This document shows, piece after piece, positions 1 through 55,000 of a DNA stretch of 64,000 nucleotides (position 1 is the stretch's first letter; each line of letters starts with the position of its first letter). The position numbers and the translations under genes were made by a program. Source of the stretch: Hyalangium minutum (GTDB lineage: Bacteria; Myxococcota; Myxococcia; Myxococcales; Myxococcaceae); the NCBI RefSeq assembly GCF_000737315.1, contig NZ_JMCB01000003.1:558001-622000 (forward strand), given 5' to 3'. The notes below the pieces were generated by a model that saw nothing but the letters and a program-made list of their open reading frames with translations, made no database searches and was not told the DNA's origin.

Positions 1-218
1 GAGTCCGTCGTGAAGATGAGGAAGAGGTCGATATCGTGCAAAGGCCGGATGGCCGTATTCCGTCCATACGAGCCACTGAGAATGGACTCCCGCGGGCTCA
101 GATGGTGACGCAACGCATCGAAGACGACCCGCTCCTGACGCTGCGCCTCGCGGTTCTCACCTTCGCGGAGCTCTAGGTCCTGCATGAACTGCTCGAATGA
201 CTGCGCCACAGTCGGCAT
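1..218 (-). CDS. SMODS / CD-NTase (cGAS-DncV-like) nucleotidyltransferase, N-terminal 72 codons only (gene continues beyond the left edge)
   Basis: Manual translation of the minus strand from ATG at 218: MPTVAQSFEQFMQDLELREGENREAQRQERVVFDALRHHLSPRESILSGSYGRNTAIRPLHDIDLFLIFTTD. It contains the GSY-x-R-x-T-x-I-x4-DID motif of Pol-beta-family CD-NTases. AGGAG RBS at about 228-232. Not in the ORF track because no stop codon lies in the window. Confidence 0.8.
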   Translation of the reverse strand, partial: MPTVAQSFEQFMQDLELREGENREAQRQERVVFDALRHHLSPRESILSGSYGRNTAIRPLHDIDLFLIFTTD

Positions 219-414
219 CGTTGGTGTCTCCTCTCTTGCTAAGAGACACGAAGGAGACCGCAGGCATTACATCTGCTGAGCACAGCAAGCCGACAATTCC
301 TGGACTACATTGCCCCACCTCCTTCGCGCAGGGCGTCCAGCGCGAGGAGCAGGAGAGAGCAAATTTCCCGCTCTCCCCCTCCCCTTCAGCTCAAGGCCGC
401 GCGAGCGTCTCCGC

Positions 415-1680
415 TCACCACTTCCCGTTCTTGCTCAGGCCCTTGAGCTTGGTCTCGGCCTTGGCGAAGTTGTCGGCCGCCTTCCCCTTGCCGGAGAGCG
501 TGGCGTAGACGCTGTTGCGGAACTCGTTGCTCACCTGGTTGTACTTCGTGCCGGTGATGGTCGGCCGAGGCACCGCGTTGGTGAAGGTGGTGTAGAGGCT
601 GCCGAAGAACGGGTTGGCCTTCAGCAGCTCCGCGTCCTGGTAGAGGCTGGTGATGGTCGGGTTGAACGCACCCACCAGGGCCCGGCGCTTCTGCTCCTCG
701 TAGCTGGTCAGGTACTTCACCAGATCCACCGCCAGATCCTTGTGCAGCGAGTACTTCGGCACCCCGAGCTGCCAGCCACCCAGCGTGCCCGTGGACTTGC
801 CGTCCGCGCCACCCTTGGGCAGCGCCATCACGCCCACCTTGCCCTTGATCGGGCTGTCCTTGTTGTTGGCCAGCGCCCACGCATACGGCCAGTTGCGCAT
901 GAACACCGCATTGCCGGACTGGAAGGCGCCGCGAGCCCCCTCCTCCTCGTAGCTCAGCACGCCCTTGGGCACCACGTTGCCCACCAGCGAGGCGATGAAG
1001 TCGACGGCCTCCGCGGCCTTCGGGTTGTTGAGCGTGACCTTGCCCTGGGGATCCACCACCGTGCCGCCGCCGAAGGAGTCCACCCACTCCAGCGCGTTGC
1101 ACGTCAGGCCCTCGTAGGACTTGCCCTGGAACACGAAGCCCACGAGCTTGTCATTGCCCGCCTTCTTCTCACCCTCCAGCACCGTGCGGGCCGCCTGCGC
1201 CAGCTCCTGCCACGTGGTGGGCGGCTTCTGCCCGTACTTCTCCAGCAGATCCGTGCGGTAGTAGAGCAGCCCCGCGTCCGTGAACCAGGGCATGGCCACC
1301 AGCTTCCCGTTCACCGTGTTGTTCTGCACGATGGGCTGGAAGTGCTGCTTCAGCACGTCCTCGGGGATGTAGGGCTTCAAGTCGATGAAGTGGTTGGCCA
1401 CGAGGCCCGGCCACACGATGTCGATGCGCGCGACATCCAGATCCGTCGAGCCCGCCGCCAGCAGCTGCTGAAGCTGTGCCAGCTCCTGGGTGGCATCCGT
1501 GGACGCGCTCATGATCTGCACGGTGTGCCCAGTCTTCTTCGCCCAGGCCTCCGCGCCCTGCGTGCACAGGTCCTTCTCCATGCCCACGCTGCCACAGGCG
1601 ATGTGGAGCGTCTCGGCTCGCGCCAGTGTGGGGTTGACCAGCGCCGCCGCAGCTACGAGCCCTGCCATGACCTTCTTCAT
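415..1680 (-). CDS. ABC transporter sugar-binding protein (trehalose/maltose-type, SBP family 1)
   Basis: Signal peptide [22 protein letters not shown]; motifs [36 protein letters not shown] and [11 protein letters not shown], typical of trehalose/maltose-binding proteins. Confidence 0.9.
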
Positions 1681-1728: not shown

Positions 1729-4131
1729 CTACAAAAGGATCTCCAGCCGCCTCCAGTCCCCCTCCACGTCGAGCGTGAGCTTCCCCTCCGCGAAGCGGTG
1801 CTGTCGGGCGCCTCGCACCTCGCGGGGAGCGGGCAGGCCGTAAACACACAGCGTCTCCTGCTGGCGCGCCAGCGGCAACTCTCCTTCCGTTGCACGCTCG
1901 AGCACGCAGCGGCCGGACTGCCACTCTCCGACGAGCCGCGTTAGCCGCGCCGCGCCATAGCCCTCGCCCGCGTCTTCATACAGACGCGCGTCAATGCGCG
2001 GCGCCGCGTGGATGTGCCACGTGAGCTGCTTCCACTGGGCCGTGGTGGTGTGCAGCGCCGGCTCCGTGAGCGCCACCGCGCCTCCCGCACGCAGCCACAG
2101 CGGCACCGTGTCCAGCGGGGCCTCGGCCAGCGTGTGCTGCCGCCCCTCGAGGATCTCCCCGGAGGGCGCCAGCTGCGAGAAGGGCAACCACCGGCCCTCG
2201 GGCAGGTACATGTGCCGCCGCGTCCGGTACTGGCGAACGATGGGCGCGACGAGCAGATCCCGGCCGAACAGGAACGCATCGTCCATGCGCAGCGCCTCCG
2301 TGTCCCCAGGCGCATACATGACGAGCGGACGCATCACCGGCAGCCCCTCCACGGACGCCTCGTGCATCAGCGTGTAGAGGGTGGGCAGCAGCCGGTAGCG
2401 GTGCTCCATCCACTGGCGGGTGAGCGACAGGTAGGGCTCGCCGAAGCACCAGGGCTCCTGCTGCGGCGTGCCCTTGGCGGAGTGGTTGCGCAGCATCGGG
2501 TAGAAGGCGCCCAGCTGCGTCCAGCGCACCAGCATCTCCCCGGAGGCCCGCCCCAGGAAGCCCGGCACATCCACTCCCGCGAAGGACACCCCGGACAGAC
2601 CCAGCCCCAGGAGCATGGAGATAGAGAGTTCCAGGTGCGCCCAGTAGCTGGAGTTGTCCCCCGTCCACACCGCAGCGTAGCGCTGGATGCCAGCGAAGCC
2701 CGCCCGCGTCAGCACGAAGGGCCGCCGCTCCGGTGCCAGCTCGCGCAGCCCCTCGTAGGTCCCCTTCGCCATGCCCAAGGCGTAGACGTTGTGCACCTCC
2801 AGGTGGCGCCTGTCGCCGTGCCGGGCGTCATAGGGCAGCGTGATCCCCTCCACCTTGCCCACGTCCGCCGAGGGCACCCCGGGCACGGAGAAAGACTCAT
2901 TCCCGTTGAGGAGCTTGAAGCAGGACGGCTCGTTCATGTCGTTCCAGAAGCCCGAGATGCCGGTCTCCAGGAACTCCTTGTGCAGCTTGCCCCACCACTT
3001 TTGCACCGGCGCGCGCGTGAAGTCCGGGAACACGGCGGGCTTGGGCCACACCTCTCCGAGCAGCACGCTGCCCCGGTCATTGCGCACCAGGAAGTCGCTG
3101 GCGAGCGCCTCGTCATAGACGCGGTAGCCCGGCTCGGCCTTCACCCCGGGATCGACGATGGTCACCAGCCGCACGCCCTGCTCGGCCGCCTCGCGCGCCA
3201 GCCCAGCGGGATCCGGATAGCGGGTCTTGTCCCACGTCCAGACCTTGTAGCCCTCCATGTAATCGATATCGAGGTACAGGCAGTCCAGCGGGAGCCGGGC
3301 CTTGCGATAGCCGTGGAGGACAGCGCGGATGTCCTTGGCGTTCTCGTAGCCCCAGCGAGACTGCTGCGCCCCCAGGCTCCAGAGCGGCGGCAAGGGCGCC
3401 CGGCCCGTGAGCGCGGTGTAGCGCTTCACCACGTCCGAGGGCAGCGGGCCCGCGAACACATAGGCATCCAGTTCGGGGCCCGAGGACTCCCATCGCACGC
3501 CCAGGGGATCCTCGGCCGCCACGTCCACTTCCATCCTCCACGACTCATCGAGGAAGAAGCCCCAGGCGATGCCATCGCGCAGGCCCAGGCTGAAGGGGAT
3601 GGACTGGTAGAGCGGATCCGTGTCCGGGTGGTGCGGCAGCACGTCCGTGTTCCAGAAGGTGAAGCGCATGCCGCGCTTGTCGAGCGCCCCCACCTTCTCG
3701 CCGAAGCCCAGCCAGGCCTCGTCGACGGGCGAGCGCAGCGTGAGCCGGGAGCGGAAGCGCGTCACGGGGTAGTCCGGCCGCACCTCTCCGGCGAAGCTGT
3801 CACACCGGGCGAGCTCCCGGCCGCCGGCATCCCTCAGCCGCCAGGTGCCCAGTGCCAGCTGCACCTCCAGCGACAGCTCTTCCGTGCCCACCACCACGGT
3901 CTGCTCCGCGCCCTGCCCCTCCCGGCGGATCGACAGGGGCCGCTCCAGATGCTCCAGCACGGACCAGGACTGCTTGGAGGGCACCTCTCGCAGCGTGACG
4001 GCCGCGGCCCCCAGCGAAGGCAGGTGACGCAGCCTCAGGACTCCGGGCAACGGGCTGCGGATCTCCAGGGCGGAGTGGGAACCCCAGAAGGTGACTCGGG
4101 TGGTTTCAGCGGAGAGATCGTTGAAGTGCAT
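1729..4131 (-). CDS. GH31 alpha-glucosidase
   Basis: Motifs LDIDYMEG, GFWNDMNEPS (nucleophile), WTGDN (acid/base), RWTQLGAFYPMLRNHS. Start moved from 4161 to ATG 4131 because 4161 lies inside the upstream terminator stem. Confidence 0.92.
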   Translation of the reverse strand: MHFNDLSAETTRVTFWGSHSALEIRSPLPGVLRLRHLPSLGAAAVTLREVPSKQSWSVLEHLERPLSIRREGQGAEQTVVVGTEELSLEVQLALGTWRLRDAGGRELARCDSFAGEVRPDYPVTRFRSRLTLRSPVDEAWLGFGEKVGALDKRGMRFTFWNTDVLPHHPDTDPLYQSIPFSLGLRDGIAWGFFLDESWRMEVDVAAEDPLGVRWESSGPELDAYVFAGPLPSDVVKRYTALTGRAPLPPLWSLGAQQSRWGYENAKDIRAVLHGYRKARLPLDCLYLDIDYMEGYKVWTWDKTRYPDPAGLAREAAEQGVRLVTIVDPGVKAEPGYRVYDEALASDFLVRNDRGSVLLGEVWPKPAVFPDFTRAPVQKWWGKLHKEFLETGISGFWNDMNEPSCFKLLNGNESFSVPGVPSADVGKVEGITLPYDARHGDRRHLEVHNVYALGMAKGTYEGLRELAPERRPFVLTRAGFAGIQRYAAVWTGDNSSYWAHLELSISMLLGLGLSGVSFAGVDVPGFLGRASGEMLVRWTQLGAFYPMLRNHSAKGTPQQEPWCFGEPYLSLTRQWMEHRYRLLPTLYTLMHEASVEGLPVMRPLVMYAPGDTEALRMDDAFLFGRDLLVAPIVRQYRTRRHMYLPEGRWLPFSQLAPSGEILEGRQHTLAEAPLDTVPLWLRAGGAVALTEPALHTTTAQWKQLTWHIHAAPRIDARLYEDAGEGYGAARLTRLVGEWQSGRCVLERATEGELPLARQQETLCVYGLPAPREVRGARQHRFAEGKLTLDVEGDWRRLEILL

Positions 4132-4141
4132 GGGCGCTGAT

Positions 4142-4186
4142 AAAAAAGAGAGGCTGCCCATAGCATTCCTTGGGCAGCCCCTCTCT
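4142..4186 (-). terminator. Rho-independent terminator downstream of the GH87 gene
   Basis: Imperfect inverted repeat agagaggctgccca (4147-4160) / tgggcagcccctctct (4171-4186), followed on the minus strand by a T6 run (4142-4147). Confidence 0.75.
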
Positions 4187-4210
4187 AGAAAACCGGCAAC
4201 TTCTTACGCG

Positions 4211-7200
4211 CTACCAGTTGTTGCCACCACCGCTGGTGATGGTGAAGCCGCCGCTGCTCTGGTTGGCGACCTTGGCGGTGGGGGCGTTGTTCACCGTCAC
4301 GTTGGTGAAGGTGCCGCCGCCCCGCGCCGTGGACAGCACCTGGATGCCGTAGTTGGTGGGGTTGTTGATGGTGATGTTCTGGAAGGCCAGGTTGGTGAAC
4401 ACGCCTCCGTTGCTCTGGATGCTGATGCCCTGGTACGTCGGGTCGATGATGTCCACGTTCTTGATCGTGATGTTGTTGGTCGGGTTCTGGTCGGCGCGCA
4501 GCCAGATCGAACCGAACTGCTGCCCACCCCAGTAGGTGCCGCCGCTGCGGATGATCGTCAGGCCATCCACCGTCGCGGACTGCATGGGGTACGGATTGAA
4601 CTCGGAGCTGACCGTCAAGCCGGGATAGGTCAGCGTGTCGGAGACGACGCTGTTCTCGATCCGGTTGTTGAGGCCGCCGTAGATGGCGAAGCCCGCGGCG
4701 CGCCAGACGATCTGCACGGTGCAGTTGCGAATCACGTTGTTGGTGGCCGGGAACGGGTACAGGTCGGTCGCGGACCAGATGGCGAACGCATCGTCACCCG
4801 TGTTGCGGGCGTGGGAGTTCTCCACGATGCTGTCCTTGGTGCCGTTGCAGAGGTTGACGGCGTCCGCGCCGGTGTTGCGGAAGCGCGAGTTGCTGATGCG
4901 CAGGTTCGTCGACTCGGAGTTGCCGCCCACCCAGTAAGCGCACTGGACGTGCTCGACCCACATGTTCTCGATGACGGTGTTCTTGTAGGCCGAGTTCACC
5001 CACGCCTTGCCGCCCTGGGTCCGCAAGCCATCCGTGTTGCCGAAGATGGCGAAGTCCCGGAACTTCGCGTTGTCGCCAGTGATGATGAAGCCCGTCTGGC
5101 CCCAGCCCGCATCCTCGTTCAGCGCGGCGTTGTAGAGCTTCGTGTACCACATGCCCGCGCCCTGGATGGTGACGCCCTTGACCTGGATCTTGTTGGTCTG
5201 GTCGAAGGTGCCCGGCGGCAGGTACACACCCGCGTAGGTGCCAGCCTGCACCGCCCAGATGGCCTGGTTGATGGCGTTCTCGTCCGAGATGCCGTCGTTG
5301 GGGATCGCGGGCGCCCAGCTGTGGCCGCCCTCGGTGACGTCGATGTAGCCCGCGGGCTTGGCGATCGGCGCGCCCACCAGCTCCAGATCGATGAAGTCGA
5401 TGGCGTAGTACGGCGAGGTGTCGCCCGAGTCCTTCTGCAGGCGAACGGTGGCCCCGGCCGGGATGGTGGTGTTCAGCAGCTTGCTCGACTCGTCATAGAT
5501 GCGGCGCGGGGCGCCGGCCGAGGGCGAGTTGAACTGGGTGGCATCATCGCCGTAGACCCAGGCCTCCTTGGAGGAGAGGTTGAGCGTCCCCAGCTTGCTG
5601 CCGTTGACGTAGAGGCTCAGCGTCGCCTGGATGCCACCACCGCCCGCCGCGTCCGGCATGCTGTTGCGGACCACGATGGCGTTCGCCGGGGCCACGGTCG
5701 TCCACTCCACGTACTGGCCCGTCGCGTTGAGGACCACCGCCTTGCGGCCCGAGGCCTCACCCGCGATGGTGCCCAGCGCCCGGCTCGGGCCCTGGACGGC
5801 GCCGTTGGTGCGCCCGTTCTCCGCCTCGTACTCGATCCAGGGCACGTTGGCGCCACGGCCGACGAAGAGGCTCGAGGTCAGCGAGTTGTTGGTCTCCACG
5901 GACTCGGAGATGGCCGACGCGGGGTCCACCGTCGCCACAAGGGTGTGGTTGCCGTTCGTGGCCGTCCACGTGCCGCTCAGGGTGACCGCCGCGCCGGCGC
6001 CCGCCGCGAGCGAGCTGGGCACCGTCCCATTCAGGGTCGTCGCTCCATCAATCACCAGCCGCACCGCCACGGAGGAGCCGGGCGTGGGATCGAGGCCCTG
6101 GTTCGTCACCGTCACCGTGAAGGAGACCGCCGCGCCCGCCGCGGGCGTCGACGGCGTCGAGGAGATGGCCTGGACGATCAGGTCCGGACCGGGGCGCCGC
6201 GACACCGTCAGCGTCTTGGTGAAGCTGTTGTTGCTGTCGTTGAACTCGGCGATGGCGTTGTCCGGATCCACCACGGCCGTGACCGGATAGCTGCCGTACG
6301 AGGTGGACCACGAAGCGTTCGCCGTCAGGGTGACGCTGGCGCCCGCCGCGAGGGACGTCGTCGAGGGCAGCGTCGACACCGCGACCTCCGCGCCGTTCAC
6401 GAGGAAGGAGACCTTGTGGACGCTGCTCGGGCTGGCGCCGGTGCCGGCGTTCTTCACGACGGCCTTGAAGGAGATGGCCTCGCCCTCCTGCGGGGGGCTG
6501 CTCGGCGCGGTCCACTGGATGTCGGTGACGGTCAGGTCCGCCCGCTGCGTGGCCGTGGCGGCCACGGTGATGTAGTCCAGGTTGACGTTCGCCACGTCTC
6601 CCGCGTCGTACTGGTACGCCACCGCGTTGCTGCCCGCGTTCAGATAGACGGCCTGCGCCTTGTTGGCCCAGGTCGTCCAGGCGCCCGTGGTGGGCAGCGA
6701 GACCTGGCCCTGCTTCGTGCCGCCCACGTAGAGCGAGAGGTTGGAGTCCGTGAAGCCATTGCCGTAACGCAGCGTGACGTCGTACCAGCCGGCGCTCGCG
6801 ACGGACACGTTGAACTGGGTGCGCGCGCCCTGGGTCCAGTAGCCCTCCACGAAGCCCGTGCCGCTGTAGCCTGTGTGGTTGCTGTTGATCTGCGCGCCCC
6901 CGCTCAGGGTCGCGGACTCACCCTCATACTTCGAGCCGCCGGTGCTCGCCGTGTACGTGGCGGTGATTGTCGTCGCGGCCGCGGTCATCGTGTACGTCGT
7001 CGAGGCCGAGCTGGCATTGCCGAAGCTCGAGGCCACGCCACCAGTCCAGCCATTGAAGACCTGGCCGGACGACGGAGCGTTGGCCGAGATGTTCACGACG
7101 GCGCCGGACGCGTAGGAGCCACTGCCCGAGCCGTTGTTCACGGTCAGTGCATAGGTCGTTCCGCCCGCAGGCGAGCCCAGGATCTGGAACTCCGCGACCT

Positions 7201-7729
7201 GACCGCCCGGGGCGCCGCTGTTCGCGGTGAACTGGAGCCGCACCTCGCTCACCGTCCCAGAGACGGGGATCGTCACCTGATTGCCCGTCGACGGATTGAA
7301 GGTGTAGGTCGCCGAGGCCACGAGCGTCGAGAAGGTGGTCGTGCTGGCGTTGTGTCCCAGCACCGAGAACGTCTGGGTGCGCGTGCTCCAGGCACTGTCC
7401 GGGTTGAGCTGCACCACGACGGAGCTGATCGTGTGGTTGCTGCCCAGGTTCACCGTCAGCGTGTTGGGGTACGCGTTGGCCGTGCCCTCCCAGTAGGTGG
7501 CCCGGTTGTTGTCGTTCGCGTTCGTCGCCGCGTAGACCTGCGTGTAGCCGGAGGTCGTGATGCTCTTGCCGAGCGCGACGTTCGTGTCCACCGCCTGCGT
7601 CACGACTCCGGCGGGATCCACCACGGAAGCTGAAGGCGAAGGTTCGCAAGCGCTGATGAGCAGTTGGAGAACCATCCATACGGCGACGCCGCTTGTGCGC
7701 CGCCAATCTGACACTCTCGTGTTTTTCAC
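4211..7729 (-). CDS. Lipoprotein alpha-1,3-glucanase/mycodextranase (GH87-like) with CBM32, CBM6/35 and 2x CARDB domains
   Basis: Lipobox LLISAC; F5/8-type domain (NLALGK-like NVALGK...ATYWE); CBM6/35-like YEGESATLSGGA; two CARDB repeats (DLTVTDI, DLIVQAI); C-terminal VPWIEYEAE...EASGRKAV...ANAIVVRNSMPD and beta-helix repeats (RNTGADAVN, RNTGDDAFAIWS) typical of GH87. Confidence 0.82.
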   Translation of the reverse strand: MKNTRVSDWRRTSGVAVWMVLQLLISACEPSPSASVVDPAGVVTQAVDTNVALGKSITTSGYTQVYAATNANDNNRATYWEGTANAYPNTLTVNLGSNHTISSVVVQLNPDSAWSTRTQTFSVLGHNASTTTFSTLVASATYTFNPSTGNQVTIPVSGTVSEVRLQFTANSGAPGGQVAEFQILGSPAGGTTYALTVNNGSGSGSYASGAVVNISANAPSSGQVFNGWTGGVASSFGNASSASTTYTMTAAATTITATYTASTGGSKYEGESATLSGGAQINSNHTGYSGTGFVEGYWTQGARTQFNVSVASAGWYDVTLRYGNGFTDSNLSLYVGGTKQGQVSLPTTGAWTTWANKAQAVYLNAGSNAVAYQYDAGDVANVNLDYITVAATATQRADLTVTDIQWTAPSSPPQEGEAISFKAVVKNAGTGASPSSVHKVSFLVNGAEVAVSTLPSTTSLAAGASVTLTANASWSTSYGSYPVTAVVDPDNAIAEFNDSNNSFTKTLTVSRRPGPDLIVQAISSTPSTPAAGAAVSFTVTVTNQGLDPTPGSSVAVRLVIDGATTLNGTVPSSLAAGAGAAVTLSGTWTATNGNHTLVATVDPASAISESVETNNSLTSSLFVGRGANVPWIEYEAENGRTNGAVQGPSRALGTIAGEASGRKAVVLNATGQYVEWTTVAPANAIVVRNSMPDAAGGGGIQATLSLYVNGSKLGTLNLSSKEAWVYGDDATQFNSPSAGAPRRIYDESSKLLNTTIPAGATVRLQKDSGDTSPYYAIDFIDLELVGAPIAKPAGYIDVTEGGHSWAPAIPNDGISDENAINQAIWAVQAGTYAGVYLPPGTFDQTNKIQVKGVTIQGAGMWYTKLYNAALNEDAGWGQTGFIITGDNAKFRDFAIFGNTDGLRTQGGKAWVNSAYKNTVIENMWVEHVQCAYWVGGNSESTNLRISNSRFRNTGADAVNLCNGTKDSIVENSHARNTGDDAFAIWSATDLYPFPATNNVIRNCTVQIVWRAAGFAIYGGLNNRIENSVVSDTLTYPGLTVSSEFNPYPMQSATVDGLTIIRSGGTYWGGQQFGSIWLRADQNPTNNITIKNVDIIDPTYQGISIQSNGGVFTNLAFQNITINNPTNYGIQVLSTARGGGTFTNVTVNNAPTAKVANQSSGGFTITSGGGNNW

Positions 7730-8757: not shown

Positions 8758-11700
8758 TCAGCGCAGTTGCATGATGACCTGCACCAGCGCCAGGGCCTCG
8801 GTGACGGACTGCCAGACCTGCATGGCCTTCAGGTCTTCCTCGCCGGACTGGAGGCTGCGCTTCGCGGCGCGCTCCAGGGGCTCCAGGGCCGCCTGGATGA
8901 GCGCCACCTGCCTCGGGAGATCCACCGGAATGGGCGCGGAGGCGGCTCGCTGCAGCGCGGGCGCCATCTGCACCTGGCGCTCCGACATGGCCGCCACCGC
9001 CTTCGTGAGCTGCTCCATATAAGGACCCAGGTCCGGAGGCGGAGCCGCAGCCGCCGGGGCAGCCGCCGGAGCCTGGATCGAGCGCTCGGCCAGGGCCTTC
9101 ATCACCTTCGCCAGGTGCTGGAGGTACGGCGTCAGATCCGTTCCCGAAGTCACATTCACCACCGGTGCGGGCGGCGGCGTCTCCTTCACCTCGCGGGCCA
9201 CCTTCGCCACCTCGAGCACGGCTTCGCGCAGCGCCTCCAGGCGCGGCGTCACGGTCGCCACGGGATCCGGACCGGGCTTTCGCTCCTGCTGGCCCTTGCG
9301 CACCGTCTCCGCGGCCTGAGAGACGGCCTGTCCCACCACGCCCAGCTGCTCCTCGATGGCGCTGAGCTGGCCTGTCACGCGAGCGACCGGATCGTCCTCC
9401 TTGCCGCCCATGCGCTTGATGCGCGCGAAGCCCTGCTTGATCTCCTCCCAGCGCTTCGACTTCTCCGGAGTGAGCCGCCCGCGCATCTCGGACAGCTTGA
9501 GCAGGTTCTGCTCCGCCGCCGTGGTGAGCGTCTGGGACTCGCCCTGGTAGTGGTCGTCGATGAGCCGCTCCAGCTCCTCGTCGGTCATCGCCGCGACCAC
9601 CTTCTCGGCGAGCTTGTTCATGTTGCGGTAGCTGCCCTGGAGCTTGAACGCGGGCTCGCTGCGGAAGCGCTCGTCCTGCGCCGCCGAGGCGATGTACTGC
9701 AGGTTCACCTTCAGCAGCACCTTCTGCACCCGGAACAGCCGCTCCAGCACCGCGGTGATCTCCTGGATCTCCGCCGCCGCGTAGCCGTACGAGAGCTCGC
9801 CCGTGTTCACCTCTTCGCCGCGCGACATCCGGATGAACTTGTGGATGTCACCCTGATCGCGCGTGGCCAGCGGGGCCAGCGCCGAGTTCGAGGTGAGCGA
9901 GTTCTCGATGTAGCTGAGCGAGAACAGATCCTCCTTGCCGTCGAGGATGTCGCCCAGGTTGTACGTGTCGGCGCGGTTGGCGAGCATGTCCGGGATCTTG
10001 AAGCGCTCGCCCGTCTCCGTGTACGGGTTGCCGGCCATCACCACGCAGAACTTCTTGCCGCGCAGGTCATACGTGCGCGTGCGGCCGTTCCAGACGCCCT
10101 CGATGCGGCGCTGTCCGTCGCACAGCGAGATGAACTTCTGCAGCAGCTCCGAGTCCGTGTGCTGGATGTCGTCGAGGTAGAGCATCACGTTGTTGCCCAT
10201 CTCGAAGGACAGGTTGATGCGCTCCACCTCCTGGCGGGCGGTGGCGTTGGGCGCCTCCGCCGGATCCAGCGACTTCACCGAGTGCCCCAGCGCCGGGCCG
10301 TTCACCTTCACGAAGGTCAGCCCGAGCCGGCTCGCGACATACTCCATGAGCGTCGTCTTGCCGTAGCCGGGAGGCGACATGAGCAGCAGCATGCCCATGC
10401 GATCCGTGCGCTTGTTCTCTCCCGCCGCGCCGAGCTGCTTGGCCAGGTTGGCGCCGATGAGCGGCAGGTACACGCCGTCGATCAGCTGGTTGCGCACGAA
10501 GGACGTGAGCACCTTGGGGCTCAGCTCCTCCAGCCGCAGCTTCCGGCGCTCGCGCTCCAGCAAGTCCCGCAGCAGGCCACGGTAGGCGTGGTAGGCCGGC
10601 ACCCGGAGCTGGCGGAACTCGCCCAGCCGCGCCAGGAACTCGTCCAGGCGCAGCATCATCTTGCGGTCTGTGATGCGCGGGTGCTGGCCGAGCAGTCCGG
10701 TCACCTCCAGCGAGGTGAGCGCGCCCGCCTCCTGGCGATCCAGCTTGCGCTCCGTGAGCAGCAGCACGGCGGCCTCCGCGGCCACGTGCGCCGCGTCCCC
10801 TGCCCCACCCTCGCGCTGCGCCAGGTACGCGTCCACCCAGGCCCGGGCAATGCGCAGGCGCTCGGGCAGGTTCTTCTCCAGGCCCCGCAGATCGTCCTCG
10901 AAGGCCGGGCGGTTCCCCTTCCGGTCCAGCTGGCCGAGGAACGCATCCTTGACCGCCACGGCCTCGGCGCTGGTGGTGAAGCGCGGCCGCTCCGCTCCCA
11001 GTTCCTCCACGAGGTAGCGCCCGGCCTGCCGGGCCTCCGCGATCGAGTGAGCGATCTTGTTCGCCGTGAGGAAGGCCCCCACGTGATCGCCCAGCTCGTT
11101 GCCCAGCACCGTCAGCTCCGCCGCGCTGGAGAACACCGAGCGCAGGCGGGCCAGGCTGCGCGCCCGGCGGTGGAGAATGGTACGGGCCGCGTCGTCCGAG
11201 TCGAAGGCCCAGTACAGCGCCGCCCAGGCCCGAGGCGTGGGAGCGAAGCGCAGCAGCCCCGCGCCCTTGTGCAGCGTCAGCAGCTTCTCGAGGATGGCGG
11301 CGGCGTCCGAGTCGTGGATGCCGCGCTCGTAGCCCTCATCGAACTTCTCGGCCGAGTACGCGCGCACGCGCTCCAGCAAGGTGCCATCGGCGGCGGACTC
11401 GTGCAGAGCCAGGAGGCTCACGCTGCTCCGGCCCTCCTCCACGTCCGCGAGCATGTTGGAAGCCAGATACTCCGAGCGGTACACCTCGCGCGTCTCGGAG
11501 ACGAGGTGCTGATCCCAGAGTTCCTTGTACTTCTCCAGCTCCGGATCCTCGAGGCGCTGGGCGTAGTCCGTGCCGGTGAGCTGCAAGTAGAGCACGCCGT
11601 CGCGCGGCAGCAGCGTCAGCTCCAGCGGCTGGGTGTTGACGTTGAAGCGGTACTTCCCGAACTTGATGACGGACTGGCCGTCCTCGAAGAGATCCTGGCG

Positions 11701-14262
11701 ATCGCGCAGGGCCCGCAGCGCGTCCTGGCGTGCGCTCTTCACGCGCGAGAGCACCTCGTCCGCGCGGACGCTGTCCTGCAGCTCCATCAGCTGCTCGGAG
11801 AGCTGGCGCAGCTTCTGGACCATGGTGTCGGACGCGAAGTACGTGTTCAGCTCGTCGTCCGACTTGAAGCTCTTGGCCCGGCGCTGCACGCCCACGAGGA
11901 TGCGCTCGGCGGCGCTGAACAGGTTCTGCGCGCGGCGCTGGCGCTCGTCCACCAGTGCCTGCTTCTTCGCCCCGAAGGCCTCGATCAGCTCCTCGCGCTT
12001 CTGGGTGATGGGGCCGAGGAACTCGTCGAACTCACCGAAGCGGCCCTCCAGCTCCTCGAGCTGGACGGTGATGCGCGACATGCCCTCGTCGCACTTCTCC
12101 GGCGTGTCCGCCACGGACAGGCCACTCTCGATGTTCTGCGCGAGCAGCTTGAACTGGGCGCCGAACTCCGCGCGCTTCTCGCGGCCCACCAGCTCCTTGC
12201 GCTTCACCTGGAGCCCGGCGCGCACCCGGTTCAGCCGGGAGAACAGCTCGGAGACCCCTTCCAGGATCTTCGCGCGGGCCAGCGGATCGCCCACCTGGAG
12301 CCCACCCACCACCTCGCCCAGCACCTCCAGGCCCTTGCCCACCTTCTCGATGTCCTCGGCGAGCGGGGCCAGCTCTGACGTGGTCTGCACCGGCTCCAGC
12401 CTGCCCAGCAGCACGTCCAGGCGATCGCCCACGGGCTGGAGCGCCTCGCCCTTCTGGAAGAAGTTCACACAGTCGGCGCTGACGCGGTCCGTCTCCTCGA
12501 CGACCTGCTTCTCCAGCGCCTCCACCCGCGAGAGCTCGATGTAGCGGATCTCCTTGAGGCTGATGAGGTGGCCGCGCTGCTGACGCAGCTCGGTGAGGGC
12601 CTGCATGTAGGCCTCGGCGTTCGTCAGCTCCTCGGGCCGCACCTTCAGCACCAGCGCCTGCTGCTTGGCGTCGGCCTCGGTGATGGCGGTGACGGCGCGC
12701 TTCTGCAGCGCCTGGACCTTCTCGAACTCATCGATGATGAGCTCGGCGGTGCGGCGCAGCGCCTCCATGGGCGCCTGGAGCCCCACCTCGGCGTGCGCGA
12801 GCCAGTAGTACGCGTCCAGCGCGCGCGTCACCGAACCAATCAGATCCTCATAGATGCGGCGGGTGGGCTTCTCGGACTTCGCGCTGCGCTGCAGGGTGAG
12901 CGCGTCGGAGATGCCGCGCACCAGCTCGGCGTTGCCCACCTTGCCCAGGTAGCCGGGGGCCGCGGGCAGGGCGGCGGCGTGCTCGGCGGAGACGAACGGC
13001 GTCTGCCAGATCTGCATCGGGTGGACGCGCGTCGGCTCGTTCGAGGTGGCGCGGAAGAGGGCCAGACACCCGTCCGCGAAGAGGCTGTAGCCGTGCCCGA
13101 GCAGCGGGTTCTGCACCTCCTTGCGCACCAGGTTGTACGGGAAGAGGACGTAGCTGCCCTCGTCGCGCCGGTGGAAGATGTAGAGCACGTCCTCGCCGTT
13201 GGGCGAGCGGATGGCCTTGGTGAACTCCATGCCCTCCGAGGTGCCCTCGAAAACCTTGAAGTCGCCCGTCTGCAGGTAGAAGCCGCCGGGGAAGATGACG
13301 CCCTGGTCCTCCGGGAGCCGGACGCACGCCTGCCCGATGGCGTCGATGCGCACCACGTGCTGTGTGCGCGTGTTGAAGACGAGGTAGCGGTGCTCCTTCT
13401 CGCGGAACGGCAGCACGCGCAGCAGAATCAGCGCGCCCACCTGTGAGTAGGCGATCTCCGCGTCATCCAGAGACTGGTCCGCGTCCGCCACGGGCTCGCT
13501 GTAGATGCCCAGGCCCGTGCTGGTGTTGTTCTCCACCTTGACGGTGAGGTCGCCCTTCACCGTCTCCACGAAGACCTGATCCAGGATGTTCACGTGCGGG
13601 TGGGTGCCCAGCACGTAGTTCTCGCGCCGCGCCACCGTCCACTCGAAGTCGTGTGACGGCGGGAAGACGTGATCGCGCTCGCCCTGGTTGTCGATATAGG
13701 TAGCGCGGCCCTCCACATCGACGCTGAAGCGGAACACCTTGATGTCCCGCAGGGTCAGGCCCGTCTGGAAGATGGCCAGCAGCCGCGACTCGGTGCGAAC
13801 CAGCTGCAGCAGCTTTGCGTCCTTGTAGTACTTGTACAGCTCCCCAAAGTCCTTCACGAACCGGGGATCCGCCAGGAAGCCACCGGCCTCCGTGGTGGGC
13901 ACAGCGGAGAGATCGAAGCCCTCCGCCGTCTTCTCGAACTTGTGCAGCGAGAAGACGTCCGCGACGGTCGTCTCCTTCTTCAACCCGATGAAGACGTTGT
14001 AGCCGAAGAGCAGGTACTTCCCGACGCTGACGATGTCGCGCGGGACGCAGTTGTTCTCCGTGCGGACCCGCTCGTTCCCGATGACGGTGAGCTCGGTGCC
14101 ACCAAAGAGGGCCTTGCGGCGCGCGTTGAGATCCGCGGCTCGGGTGCCCAGCTCTTCCGCCTGAGCGAGCAAACGGGCGCGGATGACCTCGTAGCTGCCG
14201 CCCTCCAGCGTCGTCTCGCCCGCGGGGGCAGTCCCCGCGGGCTTCGCGCCGTCAGTTGCCAT
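8758..14262 (-). CDS. Giant (1834 aa) coiled-coil AAA+ ATPase (DUF3686-type, often labelled 'DNA repair ATPase')
   Basis: Walker A SPPGYGKT, Walker B MLYLDDIQH, sensor-1 VVMAGNPY, Arg-finger-like DMLANR; long coiled-coil middle; N-terminal LEGGSYEVIRARL; strong GC3 codon bias. Confidence 0.85.
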   Translation of the reverse strand: MATDGAKPAGTAPAGETTLEGGSYEVIRARLLAQAEELGTRAADLNARRKALFGGTELTVIGNERVRTENNCVPRDIVSVGKYLLFGYNVFIGLKKETTVADVFSLHKFEKTAEGFDLSAVPTTEAGGFLADPRFVKDFGELYKYYKDAKLLQLVRTESRLLAIFQTGLTLRDIKVFRFSVDVEGRATYIDNQGERDHVFPPSHDFEWTVARRENYVLGTHPHVNILDQVFVETVKGDLTVKVENNTSTGLGIYSEPVADADQSLDDAEIAYSQVGALILLRVLPFREKEHRYLVFNTRTQHVVRIDAIGQACVRLPEDQGVIFPGGFYLQTGDFKVFEGTSEGMEFTKAIRSPNGEDVLYIFHRRDEGSYVLFPYNLVRKEVQNPLLGHGYSLFADGCLALFRATSNEPTRVHPMQIWQTPFVSAEHAAALPAAPGYLGKVGNAELVRGISDALTLQRSAKSEKPTRRIYEDLIGSVTRALDAYYWLAHAEVGLQAPMEALRRTAELIIDEFEKVQALQKRAVTAITEADAKQQALVLKVRPEELTNAEAYMQALTELRQQRGHLISLKEIRYIELSRVEALEKQVVEETDRVSADCVNFFQKGEALQPVGDRLDVLLGRLEPVQTTSELAPLAEDIEKVGKGLEVLGEVVGGLQVGDPLARAKILEGVSELFSRLNRVRAGLQVKRKELVGREKRAEFGAQFKLLAQNIESGLSVADTPEKCDEGMSRITVQLEELEGRFGEFDEFLGPITQKREELIEAFGAKKQALVDERQRRAQNLFSAAERILVGVQRRAKSFKSDDELNTYFASDTMVQKLRQLSEQLMELQDSVRADEVLSRVKSARQDALRALRDRQDLFEDGQSVIKFGKYRFNVNTQPLELTLLPRDGVLYLQLTGTDYAQRLEDPELEKYKELWDQHLVSETREVYRSEYLASNMLADVEEGRSSVSLLALHESAADGTLLERVRAYSAEKFDEGYERGIHDSDAAAILEKLLTLHKGAGLLRFAPTPRAWAALYWAFDSDDAARTILHRRARSLARLRSVFSSAAELTVLGNELGDHVGAFLTANKIAHSIAEARQAGRYLVEELGAERPRFTTSAEAVAVKDAFLGQLDRKGNRPAFEDDLRGLEKNLPERLRIARAWVDAYLAQREGGAGDAAHVAAEAAVLLLTERKLDRQEAGALTSLEVTGLLGQHPRITDRKMMLRLDEFLARLGEFRQLRVPAYHAYRGLLRDLLERERRKLRLEELSPKVLTSFVRNQLIDGVYLPLIGANLAKQLGAAGENKRTDRMGMLLLMSPPGYGKTTLMEYVASRLGLTFVKVNGPALGHSVKSLDPAEAPNATARQEVERINLSFEMGNNVMLYLDDIQHTDSELLQKFISLCDGQRRIEGVWNGRTRTYDLRGKKFCVVMAGNPYTETGERFKIPDMLANRADTYNLGDILDGKEDLFSLSYIENSLTSNSALAPLATRDQGDIHKFIRMSRGEEVNTGELSYGYAAAEIQEITAVLERLFRVQKVLLKVNLQYIASAAQDERFRSEPAFKLQGSYRNMNKLAEKVVAAMTDEELERLIDDHYQGESQTLTTAAEQNLLKLSEMRGRLTPEKSKRWEEIKQGFARIKRMGGKEDDPVARVTGQLSAIEEQLGVVGQAVSQAAETVRKGQQERKPGPDPVATVTPRLEALREAVLEVAKVAREVKETPPPAPVVNVTSGTDLTPYLQHLAKVMKALAERSIQAPAAAPAAAAPPPDLGPYMEQLTKAVAAMSERQVQMAPALQRAASAPIPVDLPRQVALIQAALEPLERAAKRSLQSGEEDLKAMQVWQSVTEALALVQVIMQLR

Positions 14263-49063: not shown

Positions 49064-52000
49064 ATGTCATCTCGTCCCCTGTTGTCCGGAGTGTATGTCG
49101 CGCTGACCGCGCTGCTGGTCTTTGCAGCCGGCTGTCATGAAGATCCGCCGCCGCCGCCCAGCGAGCAGCCGGATGCGACGCGCTCGCAGGTGCAGGTGAG
49201 CCGCAGCTCCAACGTGCTGGCCAACGGACGGGACGTCGTCACCCTCACCGTGAAGGTGGTGAAGGCGGATGGTGCGGCGCTGGCGGGCCGCACGGTGAAG
49301 CTGGAGATCAGCGGGGACGGCGCGATCGTCGCGCCGGCCTCGGGCCAGACCAACCCGGAAGGGGTGATGACGGCGACCCTGGTCTCCACCCAGGCCGGGC
49401 TCAAGAAGGTGAAGGCCTCGGTGGAAACGGACGGTGGACCGGTGGTGCTGACCTCCCAGCCCACCGTCGAGTTCATCGAGGTCCCAGCGGCGAAGCTGGC
49501 CTTCCTCAACACGAGCATTCAGGGCACGGCGGGCGCCCCGTTGAGCCCGGCCGTAGAGGTGGAGCTCCAGGATGCCGAGGGCCGTCGCGTCCCAGGCAGC
49601 ACGGCCTCGGTGACCGTGGCCCTGGCGACAGGGCCTTCGGACACGCTGGAAGGCACGCTCACGGTGGCGGCCGTGGATGGGGTCGCGCGCTTCAGCGATC
49701 TCGTCATCCAACAGGTGGGGACGGGCTACTCGCTGCGAGCCACCTCGGGAACGCTGACGGAGGCCACCAGTCCTTCCTTCGCGGTGACTGCCGCGCAAGC
49801 GGCGGTGCTGGAGCTGACAGGGCTTCCGAACAGCCTCGTCGCAGGGAGTTCGGCGGAGGTCCAGGTGACGCTGAAGGATGCCTTGGGCAACGTGGCCACC
49901 GGCTACACGGGCACGGTGCGCTTCACCTCCACGGATGGGGCGGCGGTGCTCCCGAGCGACTACACCTTCACGGCGGCCGACGCGGGGCAGAAGACGTTCA
50001 GCGCGGTGGAGCTGCGCACGGCGGGGTCCCAGTCCCTCACGGCCACGGATACGGTGACTGCCTCGCTGACGGGCACTCAGAGCACCACGGTCTCCCCTGC
50101 TGCGGCCACCAGCCTGAGCCTCTCGGCCCCGGCCTCCGCCACCGCGGGCAGTGCCTTCAGCGTCACGGTCACGGCGCGCGACGCGTTCAGCAACGCGGCC
50201 ACCGGCTACACGGGCACCGTGTCCTTCAGTTCGGATGACACGCGTGCGGCGCTGCCGGGCAGCTACACCTTCACGGCCGCCGATACGGGGGCGCACACCT
50301 TCAGCGTCACTTTGGGCACGACGGGCTCTCAGCCGGTGCGCGTCACCGACGGCACGCGCAACGCCAACGCCACCGTCACCGTCACTCCGGGCGCCGCCAC
50401 CAGCCTGAGCCTCGCTGCGCCCCTCACCGTCATGGCGGACGGCCCCTTCAACGTCACCGTCACGCTGCGGGACGCCTCCGGCAACGTGGCCACCGGCTAC
50501 ACCGGCACGGTCTCCTTCAGCTCGGACGATACGCGCGCAACGCTGCCGGGCAGCTACACCTTCACGGCCGCCGATGCGGGGGCGCACACCTTCAGCGTCA
50601 TCCTGGGCACGGCGGGCTCCCAGCCGCTCCGTGTGACCGACGGCACGCGCAACGCCAACGCCACTGTCACCGTCACACCGGCTACCGCTGCCACCCTGAG
50701 CCTCTCGGCTCCGGCCTCCGCTACGGCGGGCTCGCCCTTCTCCGTAACGGTCACGATGCGGGATACCTCCGGCAACGTGGCCACCGGCTACACCGGCACG
50801 GTGCACTTCACCTCCACGGACGGGGCGGCGGTGCTTCCGGCGGACTACACGTTCACGGCGGCCGACTCGGGGCAGAAGACATTCAGCACGGTGGAGTTGC
50901 GCACGGCGGGGGCTCAGTCCCTCACGGCCGCCGATCGGGTGACCACGACGCTGACGGATACCCGCAGCACCACGGTCTCCGCGGCCGCGGCCTCCAGCTT
51001 GAGCCTCTCCGCCCCGGCCTCTGCCCCCTCGGGCAGTGCCTTCGATGTCACGGTCACGGCCCGTGACGCGTTCAGCAACGTGGCCGCCGGCTACACGGGC
51101 ACTGTCTCCTTCAGCTCCGATGACACACGCGCCGGGCTGCCCACCAGCTACACCTTCACGGCCGCCGACGCAGGCAGCCATACCTTCAGTGTCACCCTGG
51201 GCACGGCAGGCGACCAACCGGTGCGCGTCACCGATGGCACGCGCAACGCCAGCGCCACTGTGAACGTCACCTCGGGGGCCGCCGCCACCCTGAGCCTCTC
51301 GGTCCCCTCCACCGCCACGGCAGGCAGTGCCTTCTCCGTGATGGTGACGCTGCGGGATGGCGCGGGCAACGTGGCCACCGGCTACACGGGCACGGTGCGC
51401 TTCACCTCCACAGACGCGGCGGCAGTGCTTCCAGGCGATTACACCTTCACCGCCGGCGACGCGGGGCAGAAGACGTTCAGCACGGTGGAGTTGCGCACGG
51501 CGGGGTCCCAGTCCCTCACGGCCACGGACACAGTGACCGCGACGATGACGGACACCCGCAGCACCACGGTCTCCCCTGGCGCGGCCGCCAGCCTGAGCCT
51601 CTCGGCCCCGGCCTCCGCCACCGCGGGCAGCGCCTTCAACGTCACCGTGCTGGCGCGCGACGCGTTCAACAACGTGGCCACCGGCTACACGGGTGCCGTG
51701 TCCTTCAGCTCGGATGACACGCGCGCGGCGCTGCCGAGCAGCTACACCTTCACGGCCGCCGACGCGGGCAGCCACACCTTCAGCGTCACCCTGGGCACGG
51801 TGGGCTCCCAGCCGGTGCGCGTCACCGACGGCACGCGCAACGCCAGTGCCACCGTCACCGTCAACCCGGGCGTCGCCGCCAGCCTGAGCCTCTCCGCCCC
51901 AGCCTCCGCCACCGCGGGCAGCGCCTTCAACGTCACGGTCACGGTCCGTGATGCCTCCGGCAACGTGGCCACCGGCTACACGGGCGCCGTGTCCTTCAGC

Positions 52001-55000
52001 TCGGATGACACGCGCGCGACGCTGCCGGGCAGCTACACCTTCACGGCAGCCGACGCAGGCAGCCACGCCTTCAGCGTCACCTTGGGTACGACGGGCAGCC
52101 AGCCCGTCCGGGTGACGGATGGCACACTCAACGCCAGCACCACCGTGAGTGTCACCCCAGCCGCCGCCGCGACCTTAAGCCTTTCGGTCCCGGCCTCTGC
52201 CACTGCGGGCAGCCCCTTCAACGTCACTGTCACGCTGCGAGACAGCTTCGGCAACGTGGCCACCGGCTACACGGGCACGGTGCACTTCACCTCGACGGAT
52301 GGAGCGTCGGTGCTCCCGGCGGACTCCACCTTCACGGCCGCGGACGCGGGGCAGAAGACGTTCAGCACGGTGGAACTGCGCACGGCGGGGTCTCAGTCCC
52401 TCACGGCCACGGACACAGTGACCGCGACGATGACGGACACCCGCAGCACCACGGTCTCCCCTGGCGCGGCCGCCAGCCTGAGCCTCTCGGCCCCGGCCTC
52501 CACCACCGCGGGCAGTCCCTTCGCGGTCACAGTGACAGCGCGCGACGCGTTCAACAACGTGGCCACCGGCTACACGGGCACCGTGTCCTTCAGCTCGGAT
52601 GACACGCGCGCGACGCTGCCGGGCAGCTACACCTTCACGGCCGCCAACGCGGGCAGCCGCGCCTTCAGCGTCACCTTGGGCACGGTGGGCTCCCAGCCGG
52701 TGCGCGTCACCGACGGCACGCGCAACGCCAGCGCCACCGTCACCGTCACTCCGGGCGCCGCCTCGAACCTGACCCTCTCGGCCCCAGCCTCTGCCACCGC
52801 GGGCAGCGCCTTCAACGTCACGGTCACGGCCCGCGATGCCTCCGGCAACATCGCCACCGGCTACAACGGCATGGTGTCCTTCACCTCGACCGATCCGGCC
52901 GCGGTGCTGCCGGGCATCTACCTCTTCACGCCGGGAGACGCGGGCGTGGCCTCCGTGTCCGTGGAGCTGCGCACTGCGGGGAACCGCACCATCACCGCGA
53001 CGGACACCCTCGATGCGGGGCTCACGCACACCGTGGCGGTGGCGGTCTCGGCCGGTGCTCCGGCGCAGCTCGCGTTCACCACGCAGCCACAGAGCGGCAC
53101 CGTGCGCGCGACCCTGGCCACGGTGCGTGTGGAGATCAGGGATGCCTACGGCAACACCTCCACTGCCTCGAGCCCCTCCGTGACGGTGAGCCTCACGGGC
53201 GGCAACCCTGCCTCTACGCTGAGTGGGACACGGACCGTCTCACCGGCCAGTGGCGTGGCCACGTTCTCGTCTCTCTCCATCGACCAGGAGGGCACGGGCT
53301 TCCAGCTCGTGGCCGCCGCCACGGGCCTGACGGGGGCCACGAGCACGGCTTTCCAGATCGTGGACAACCTGGCTCCGGCCGCGGCGGTCCTCACCGCCAC
53401 ACAGGCCTCGTCCTCCAGCATCCAGGTGTCGTGGACGGCGGTGGGCGATGACGGCACCCTGGGCACCGCCGCGAGCCACGATCTGCGCTACGCCACCGCT
53501 CCCATCACCAACGATGCGCAGTTCACCGCGGCCACGCCCGTTTCCCTGGCCGCGCCTCAGCCCCCGGGGAGCGCCGAGTCGGCCACCGTCACGGGACTGA
53601 ACCTCACGTCCACGTACTACTTCGCGCTCAAGGTCTTCGACGGGGCGGGCAACTCCAGCCTCTCGAACAGCCCCGGCGCGGGCGGCTCGGATCCCTGCGC
53701 GTCCGTCACGTGCACGCCGCCGGCCACAACGTGCTCGGCCAATGGCCGGAGCGTCGTCACCTACACCTCGGCGTGCGTGGACTCCGGAGGCGTGGGCGTC
53801 TGCCAAAACACCCCGACAAGCACGCTGTGCGCTTCGAACCAGACCTGCAACGCCGGCGCGTGCGTGCCAGTTACCGCGGCCAGCCAGCAGGGCCAGATCA
53901 TCATCAGTGAGTTCAGCGCCCTCGGCGCGGAGTTCATCGAGTTGCGCAACACCACGGCCACGGCCATCGACGTGCGGGGCTACACGCTGCGCAACATCGC
54001 AGGCCAGGAGGTGGATATCCGCGCTCCGAACGACCCGAACGGCACGGGCTCCACCCCGGTGCAGGTGCCCGCCAACGGCGTGCTCTACGGCATCCCCAAC
54101 CCGTCCAGCTCTGTCCCGGGAGGCGTGGGCTTCATCTACGGCGCGCCGGGCACCTCCTTCGCGCTGGCGGACACAGGGGACGCGCTCGCGCTCTACGCGG
54201 CGCCTCCGGCGGGCAACCTGCAGGACCTGGTGGACTTCCGCACCTTCGTCACCAACCCGAACACGCCACTGACGGCGAGCGCCTTCGTGGGCTTCTCCGG
54301 CAGCTCCACCCAGCTGGAACCCACCACATCCACGGCGGCTGGCAACGACACGGCCACCAACTGGTGCGTGAGCTTCTACCCGAACGGGGCTCGCGGCTCG
54401 CGCGTCACGAACACGGCGGGCGCTCTCAACGGCAGCTGCAAGGTGGCCGTCATCAACGAAGTCATCATCGATCCGCCGGGCACGGACGATCAGAAGTCCT
54501 TCGTGGAGCTGGCCGGCCCGGGTGGAGCCGTCATCGGCGGAGCAAAGATCACGGACGTGGAAGGTCTCGGGGGCACGGCGGGCGCACTGAATGCGGATGG
54601 AGATCTCAGCACGGGCGAGACGGACGGCGAGTTCACCCTCCCCGCCGGCACACGCTTCCCTGCGGATGGCATCCTGCTGGTGGCGGACGCGAACTCGTCG
54701 GTGACCTCGACTCAGGTGGTGGGCTTCACGCCGGGAGTGGACGTCCTGGCCCGGGACATGGACGTGGAGAACTCCGGAGGAGACTCCATCCAACTGGTCT
54801 CCGCCACGGGCACCCTGCTCGATGCGGTGGGCCATGACGCCAACGGCGCCACCCTGGCCACCAACGTGGCCTACAACGGCCTGGCCCTGTACGAGACGGC
54901 CACCGCGCTGACACCCACGACGCCAGCCGGCACTGCGGCCCCCTCGCTCGCTCGCAATACGCTGAGCACGGACACCGACAACAACCGCAACGACTTCCGG

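Follow-up and report, generated by a model that had tools for sequence, protein, structure and literature searches.

The minus strand of positions 1-270 in a 64,000-nucleotide stretch of the Hyalangium minutum genome (positions 558,001 to 622,000 of contig NZ_JMCB01000003.1; this whole stretch is called the window below) holds, with high confidence, the start of a ten-gene anti-phage island. It comprises a predicted promoter (P1), a ribosome-binding site (RBS) and the first 72 codons of cdn1, a gene for a nucleotidyltransferase of the cGAS/DncV-like kind (CD-NTase), 293 amino acids (aa) long. The island is not a new system; it is the orthologue of the published island of Myxococcus xanthus in which an antiphage signalling system based on cyclic oligonucleotides (CBASS) and a CRISPR module are regulated by the sigma factor DdvS and its anti-sigma factor DdvA. 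It thereby adds a second, naturally CRISPR-less example of a CBASS island under sigma/anti-sigma control.

On the minus strand, window positions 218..1 translate without a stop codon into MPTVAQSFEQFMQDLELREGENREAQRQERVVFDALRHHLSPRESILSGSYGRNTAIRPLHDIDLFLIFTTD, after which the frame leaves the window at its left edge. This start of Cdn1 (1..218, with the ATG at 218..216) already holds G49, S50, D62 and D64, and the peptide string quoted in a preliminary description of the stretch, which had read a CD-NTase from the ATG at 218, is found exactly inside it. The RBS claimed there can be read directly from the sequence as GAGAGGAG at 228..235 (minus strand), with the end of its GGAG core 9 nt ahead of the ATG; in a three-species alignment it is conserved in Archangium lansingense and similar in M. 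xanthus. It had also been remarked that the frame is missing from the list of open reading frames (ORFs), and it is indeed absent, because frames that run off the window are not listed. For annotation this means that cdn1 is 'hidden' solely through the window edge, and the same window also carries the first promoter of the island. As long open frames are common in high-GC DNA, and all six frames of this window DNA (68% GC) hold long open stretches, the edge frame alone proves little and the weight lies with the profile scores. The 72-aa fragment matches the PADLOC Cyclase profile PDLC00823 at E = 2.1e-21, Pfam SMODS with 36.3 bits (cut-off 26.5) and NCBIfam CBASS_cyclase_b at E = 4e-11.

The gene continues to the left of the window. 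In the source contig, JMCB01000003.1 of assembly GCA_000737315.1, the locus L001 repeats window sequence in reverse complement over its first 11,680 bases, and cdn1 is intact there at positions 11463-12344 and encodes the full 293 aa. A profile search of the kind proposed in the preliminary description agrees with its assignment, as the full protein reaches 283.6 bits with PADLOC Cyclase PDLC00823 over residues 2-292 of 293, and 86.6 bits with Pfam SMODS (cut-off 26.5). There are 561 homologues at E <= 1e-5, and an alignment with 38 homologues (39-82% identity) shows no variation at G49, S50, D62, D64 or the third Asp, D121. The closest solved structure is CdnD of Pseudomonas aeruginosa ATCC 27853 (PaCdnD; entries 6p82, 6p8j and 6p8u), which serves a type III CBASS as its cyclase, with 30-31% identity. 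In a search of the PDB sequences it aligns with residues 3-292 of Cdn1 (E = 5e-33), and the third Asp is located in the segment fDvvPaf. The two proteins have 293 and 300 aa, respectively, with the catalytic D62 and D64 at the same positions. Both residues align with those mutated in 6p8j, and as this D62N/D64N mutant entry is among the best fold matches, the catalytic residues of Cdn1 are fixed.

The AlphaFold2 model of Cdn1, built from the alignment of 38 homologues, has a mean predicted local distance difference test score of 94.3 and a predicted template modelling (TM) score of 0.90. It shows the bilobed cGAS-like fold, with helices from 150 to 286 that make up a C-terminal helical lobe, and agrees with 6p82 at a TM-score of 0.90. 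The PaCdnD entries (0.88-0.91) are the best PDB matches, followed by the trinucleotide synthases EcCdnD, CdnC and CdnB, and all of the best 50 fold matches listed are CD-NTases. The preliminary description had named the lack of a third catalytic Asp and of a C-terminal lobe as evidence that would speak against its reading; both are present, with D121 invariant in the 38 homologues and the lobe in a model that fits 6p82. From the profile, active-site and fold matches, with other Pol-beta families below their cut-offs, it follows that Cdn1 is a complete CD-NTase of the CdnD-like kind with an intact active site, for which cyclase activity is predicted.

The suspicion that a defence island extends to the left of the window was borne out when the contig was followed in that direction, as the island spans about 11.8 kb and ten genes (L005, a second locus on the source contig, adds 9.6 kb beyond L001). 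An effector gene, which had been expected near the cyclase, begins 5 nt past the cdn1 stop codon. It encodes a CHAT-SAVED protein of 649 aa that matches PADLOC SAVED_CHAT (4.9e-83) as well as Pfam CHAT and SAVED (the latter at 5e-26), with an intact His224/Cys273 dyad that is invariant in the alignment. The DdvS orthologue, a sigma factor of the extracytoplasmic function (ECF) type with 180 aa, has a stop codon that overlaps the start of ddvA as TGATG. The DdvA orthologue, a membrane anti-sigma factor of 989 aa with zf-HC2, transmembrane and TPR-CHAT parts, aligns over residues 2-989 with DdvA in 8rot_B (PDB 8ROT, 1361 bits) and also matches 8rlz ('Antisigma factor DdvA', N-terminal domain, 3.6e-32). 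A small protein of 118 aa (L005 8135-8491) comes next, and then a C25-type Cys peptidase of 483 aa with a weak Peptidase_C25 match and conserved SHG (H253) and ACFG (C304) motifs, which is a candidate second protease. The search of PDB sequences gave no match for the C25-type protein and nothing useful for the 118-aa protein, for which no family was matched either. The remaining genes encode the second CD-NTase, Cdn2 (364 aa, PADLOC Cyclase 4.6e-139), the E1/E2 protein Cap2 (587 aa, with Cap2_linker and ThiF domains) and the JAB protein Cap3 (177 aa, Prok-JAB domain), which closes the island.

Two details were noted in passing for the 118-aa gene. It overlaps, through its stop codon, with the GTG that starts the C25 peptidase gene, and its product has a Lys/Gly/Asp-rich C-terminal tail that derives from a 12-bp repeat, GCAAGGGAGACA, present in 2.8 copies (L005 8448-8480).

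HORMA and TRIP13/Pch2 domains were found in none of the genes of L001 or L005. Type III CBASS was therefore rejected, and the first module is of type I by gene content, as the M. xanthus authors also called theirs (PMC11506125).

The island differs from its surroundings in composition. The DNA at the edge had been described as less GC-rich than its neighbours, which is correct both for the raw sequence (GC 0.595 at window 1-200 vs 0.65-0.72 further in) and at the level of genes, where the G+C content at third codon positions (GC3) is 0.80 in cdn1 vs 0.94 in the adjoining gene for a sugar-binding protein (SBP; 415-1680, minus strand). All ten island genes have a GC3 of 0.65-0.80, and the six genes beyond Cap3 are at 0.85-0.94, so that the step on each side sets both borders; on the right-hand side the neighbouring composition is that of the SBP gene alone, whose GC3 is core-like. 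The boundary on this side is the intergenic region of 196 nt between cdn1 and the SBP gene (219..414, no strand assigned), with the GC3 contrast across it. After Cap3, L005 holds genes for PilZ, kinase, VWA, DUF3105, DHH and M2 peptidase proteins. The PilZ gene, the kinase gene and a gene of 431 aa were considered as members of the island and rejected, as their GC3 (0.86-0.93) is flank-like and conservation in the other genera is lacking.

DdvS promoters have the pattern GTAAn16CGT (PMC6061681). A match, GTAATGCCTGCGGTCTCCTTCGT, is located at 248..270 on the minus strand, with the -35 element GTAA at 270..267 and the -10 element CGT at 250..248, and is taken here as the predicted DdvS-dependent promoter P1; it starts 52 nt upstream of the ATG of cdn1. 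L001 and L005 hold four matches to the pattern, where about 0.4-0.5 are expected, and none of 100 shuffles reaches four. Three of the four lie on the coding strand ahead of a gene, with the first base of the match 52 nt from the start codon of cdn1, 55 nt from that of ddvS and 35 nt from that of cdn2. The three sites recur in M. xanthus with identical spacings, and in A. lansingense the pattern is matched three times, at equivalent positions. In the three-species alignment of P1, GTAAT, CTCC and CGT are invariant. From the orthology with M. xanthus I infer that DdvS drives P1 in H. minutum. A scan of window 1-600 found no sigma-70-type promoter and called no intrinsic terminator. Just past the stop codon of the SBP gene there is a G+C-rich hairpin (332..398, minus strand; -44.6 kcal/mol and z -2.4 upon folding) with a perfect core stem of 12 bp (379..351) and without a U-tract, which may be a terminator or an insulator between the sugar-uptake gene and the island. 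The window contains one more match to the promoter pattern, at 58313-58335 on the minus strand. It overlaps ORFs on both strands, including a frame of 221 aa on its own strand, and was rejected; at chance expectation, it is probably not a DdvS promoter.

The orthology with the M. xanthus island extends over the whole locus. MXAN_7291 (PMC6061681, PMC11506125) is the orthologue of Cdn1, with 56% identity over the full length and the same position behind the promoter, and the gene order that follows (CHAT-SAVED, DdvS, DdvA, small protein, C25 peptidase, second CD-NTase, Cap2) is the same in both species. The M. xanthus locus used for comparison (L003) ends inside Cap2 and is collinear with that of H. 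minutum at 54-76% identity: 58% for CHAT-SAVED, 75% for DdvS, 64% for DdvA, 57% for the small protein, 54% for the C25 peptidase, 76% for Cdn2 and 69% for the N-terminus of Cap2. According to the published map, Cap3 is the next gene after Cap2 in M. xanthus, and there are four units, in which P1 precedes the CD-NTase and CHAT-SAVED, P2 precedes DdvS, DdvA, the unknown protein and the C25-type peptidase, P3 precedes the CD-NTase, E1/E2 and JAB proteins, and P4 precedes the Cmr proteins and the CRISPR array (PMC11506125). The M. xanthus island is silent while DdvA holds DdvS, and release of DdvS raises P1, P2 and P3 up to several hundred-fold (PMC6061681, PMC11506125); for MXAN_7291, disruption of ddvA resulted in a 572-fold increase (PMC6061681). 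Once derepressed, the locus protects against phage Mx4 and not against Mx1 (PMC11506125). These defence experiments belong to M. xanthus, whereas the H. minutum island is known here from its sequence.

The two islands differ at both ends. In H. minutum the SBP gene directly abuts P1, and the left flank is not that of M. xanthus. Beyond Cap3, H. minutum lacks the CRISPR part: there are no Cmr or cas10 genes within 7.7 kb after Cap3, no CRISPR array was found in L005 or in the 64-kb window, and L005 holds no fourth GTAAn16CGT promoter after Cap3. The same ten-gene core is present in A. lansingense, Vitiosangium and Corallococcus exercitus, and in these loci, too, Cap3 is followed by neither cmr genes nor a CRISPR array nor a fourth promoter. 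The downstream neighbours are an amidohydrolase and a transporter in Archangium, integrase remnants in Vitiosangium, and a third SAVED-cyclase-ThiF set in Corallococcus. The CRISPR module is thus reported for M. xanthus alone among the loci examined, and there it rests on the published papers, as L003 ends in Cap2. Conservation of the ten-gene core, with its three promoters, spans at least five myxobacterial genera, and the CRISPR-Cas part is an optional add-on. The third set of C. exercitus (L013 13504-17754) follows directly after Cap3, where M. xanthus reportedly has its type III-B CRISPR-Cas.

PaCdnD is reportedly controlled by HORMA and TRIP13 and paired with the NucC nuclease (Ye et al. 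2020); the H. minutum island, unlike that system, has no HORMA or TRIP13 gene, and its effector is a CHAT-SAVED protease. In the type III-B SAVED-CHAT/PCaspase proteolytic cascade of Haliangium ochraceum (8tl0) a SAVED sensor is likewise fused to a CHAT protease, again in a myxobacterial host. A sigma factor and a small protein are encoded nearby in both clusters, and the second protease is caspase-fold there and C25-type here. However, in H. minutum the source of the signal is a CD-NTase instead of Cas10, the order of the domains is CHAT then SAVED, the reverse of 8tl0, no PCk kinase is encoded inside the island, and the sigma factor is paired with a membrane anti-sigma factor, DdvA. The SAVED-CHAT protein of H. 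ochraceum is activated by cyclic triadenylate (cA3), and its myxobacterial relatives occur in CBASS-like operons which encode two to three cyclases along with a kinase, a sigma-70-type factor and thiF (bioRxiv 10.1101/2023.06.23.546230). In the type III CRISPR system CalpL-CalpT-CalpS, as here, a SAVED protease that senses cyclic nucleotides is encoded with an ECF sigma/anti-sigma pair, but the protease here is CHAT and not Lon, and the anti-sigma factor is a transmembrane TPR-CHAT protein of 989 aa. Moreover, the M. xanthus sigma factor acts upstream, turning on the cyclase gene, whereas CalpS acts downstream of the signal.

Homologues of the cyclase at 40-45% identity occur in three different gene contexts (L006, L007 and L008). 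The L007 homologue is accompanied by kinases, a sigma-70-type gene and a SAVED protein, and the L008 locus has no effector at all. In L006 (2706-11551; JGI metagenome 3300037465) a 44%-identical homologue and CHAT-SAVED are directly followed by Cmr1-Cmr6, which puts a CD-NTase and a Cas10 complex beside the same SAVED protease. These contexts agree with what Steens et al. remarked on the myxobacterial relatives of SAVED-CHAT (bioRxiv 10.1101/2023.06.23.546230).

A course of events can be proposed for H. minutum from these likenesses. As in the M. xanthus orthologue, DdvA would hold DdvS and keep the island silent, and upon release DdvS would turn on P1, P2 and P3. During infection Cdn1 would then turn NTPs into a cyclic oligonucleotide. 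A cyclic trinucleotide of the cA3 type is the likeliest product, a prediction by analogy in which I place somewhat more trust than doubt, because its closest relatives with a solved structure synthesise trinucleotides and cA3 activates the characterised SAVED-CHAT protease. The signal would bind to the SAVED domain and activate the CHAT protease, which in turn could cleave proteins of the host or of the island, so that phage replication would be stopped by abortive infection or growth arrest. The C25 peptidase may tentatively be named as the leading candidate substrate of CHAT-SAVED, although I would sooner bet against it than on it.

Several observations weigh against this reading of the cyclase and its pathway. 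With NCBIfam CBASS_cyclase_b, full-length Cdn1 scores 197 bits, just under the equivalog cut-off of 200, with the profile covered from 1 to 275 of 275. The P1 pattern is short, and the whole window contains two matches where 1.08 are expected; being near chance frequency there, P1 derives its weight from its position and conservation. The SAVED domain is only distantly related to the cA3-binding one of 8tl0 (E = 1.3e-5) and has the reverse domain order, and PaCdnD, the closest solved relative, needs HORMA and TRIP13 partners, neither of which is encoded here. In M. xanthus the whole locus was deleted and the resistance to Mx4 was not assigned to the cyclase singly, and phage Mx4 itself did not induce the regulon (PMC11506125). 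Any product, trigger or protease substrate named for the Cdn1 pathway is a prediction, in H. minutum and for the M. xanthus orthologue alike.

Alternatively, the edge frame could belong to another Pol-beta nucleotidyltransferase, such as an MNT-type antitoxin, a CCA-adding enzyme or a KNTase, or be a chance or degraded open frame. The signature GS...DxD is common to all Pol-beta nucleotidyltransferases, and on its own cannot separate a CD-NTase from the others; the extended pattern GSYxRxTxIxxxxDID, which the preliminary description had presented as the motif of SMODS/CD-NTases, does match Cdn1, but is specific to this subfamily only. Cdn1 also has weak matches to NTP_transf_2 (E 0.0012-0.0013) and to the archaeal CCA enzyme (E about 1e-4), and chance long ORFs are frequent in this high-GC DNA. 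However, NTP_transf_2 reaches 19.6 bits against a cut-off of 21, and cca_archaeal 21.5 against 281.3, whereas SMODS is well above its own cut-off, and on these scores the MNT and CCA-enzyme readings, which the preliminary description had raised against itself, were rejected. For an MNT antitoxin one also misses a partner, as there is no HEPN or other toxin among the island genes and a SAVED effector adjoins Cdn1. With the gene intact, the 561 homologues and nothing but CD-NTases among the best 50 fold matches listed, an origin of this kind is extremely improbable. A second alternative accepts the cyclase and gives the Cdn1/CHAT-SAVED pair a mainly regulatory role in place of that of a killing effector: activated CHAT-SAVED would free DdvS by cutting DdvA in its cytoplasmic anti-sigma domain, or by cutting a partner, with a positive feedback on expression of the island. 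It would account for the joint presence of cyclase, SAVED protease and sigma/anti-sigma pair in all five genera examined, and for the sigma-70-type genes that also adjoin distant cyclase homologues (L007), and it has precedents in CalpL, which cuts CalpT to release CalpS, and in SAVED-CHAT/PCaspase, which cleaves a sigma factor. Yet P1 itself is DdvS-dependent, and MXAN_7291 is induced 572-fold on ddvA disruption in M. xanthus, which means that hardly any cyclase would be present until DdvS is set free. The published model moreover has DdvS freed by periplasmic CHAT autoproteolysis followed by RseP cleavage, and both the Polyangium mundeleinium locus L010 and L006 have the cyclase and CHAT-SAVED pair without a sigma/anti-sigma pair. 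I consider a mainly regulatory role unlikely.

The remaining question is whether the island holds two CBASS or one. Cdn1 and Cdn2, the latter primed by Cap2 and Cap3, could form one CBASS that feeds the single CHAT-SAVED, with the ddvS-ddvA-118aa-C25 cassette inserted between the effector and Cdn2. This possibility, which I hold to be real but short of probable, refines the explanation preferred here, a CdnD-like cyclase with its own CHAT-SAVED effector, and does not replace it. In H. minutum, M. xanthus, Archangium and Vitiosangium the Cdn2-Cap2-Cap3 part is without an effector of its own, whereas relatives of Cdn2 elsewhere (L009 and L011) are arranged as is usual for type II, with a SAVED effector first and then cyclase, Cap2 and Cap3. 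In P. mundeleinium (L010 3687-10433) a Cdn1-like cyclase (39% identity), a CHAT-SAVED protein of 785 aa, a Cdn2-like cyclase, Cap2 and JAB follow each other with nothing between, and myxobacterial CBASS set-ups with two to three cyclases have been described by Steens et al. (bioRxiv 10.1101/2023.06.23.546230). On the other hand, Cdn1 and Cdn2 share only about 23% identity, so that their products may differ and one SAVED pocket may not take both; the CHAT-SAVED protein of L010 is only 23% identical to that of H. minutum; and the C25 peptidase, directly upstream of Cdn2, could be the effector of Cdn2 instead. The shared effector is proposed from gene order and sequence comparison. The Polyangium locus, which is without the Ddv cassette, speaks, short of proof, for a single dual-cyclase system that was split into two 'CBASS' by ddvS-ddvA-118aa-C25.

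Taken to its full extent, the idea would have a constitutively competent CdnD-like Cdn1 and a Cap2/Cap3-primed cyclase converge on CHAT-SAVED, which would fire a caspase-like cascade via the C25-type peptidase. A phage-sensing membrane anti-sigma factor would silence the system as a whole, and the compact Polyangium locus would be ancestral, from before the insertion of the cassette. In this complete form I regard it as doubtful. If true, the island would be the CBASS counterpart of the type III-B cascade from SAVED-CHAT to PCaspase, and what the literature treats as type I plus effector-less type II CBASS would be one system. In any case, the comparison sharpens the questions about the M. xanthus system, namely which signal each cyclase makes, what the substrates of CHAT-SAVED and of the C25 peptidase are, and whether the effector is shared or not.

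The remaining observations concern the rest of the window. The right-hand neighbours of the island beyond the SBP gene (window 1729-7729, minus strand) encode a GH31 glycosidase of 810 aa and a secreted protein of 1172 aa with F5/F8 type C, CBM6/35, CARDB and CatAgl domains; together with the SBP gene they look like a cluster for alpha-glucan utilisation. At about 8758-14260 (minus strand) a protein of 1834 aa with DUF3686, DUF7902 and AAA-type ATPase domains is encoded, the 3' part of whose gene is L001 1-2923. A tandem repeat with a unit of 291 bp is found at 50105-52944, in 9.6 copies of 70% identity; in a putative frame, it may give a protein in which a domain of roughly 97 aa is repeated about ten times.

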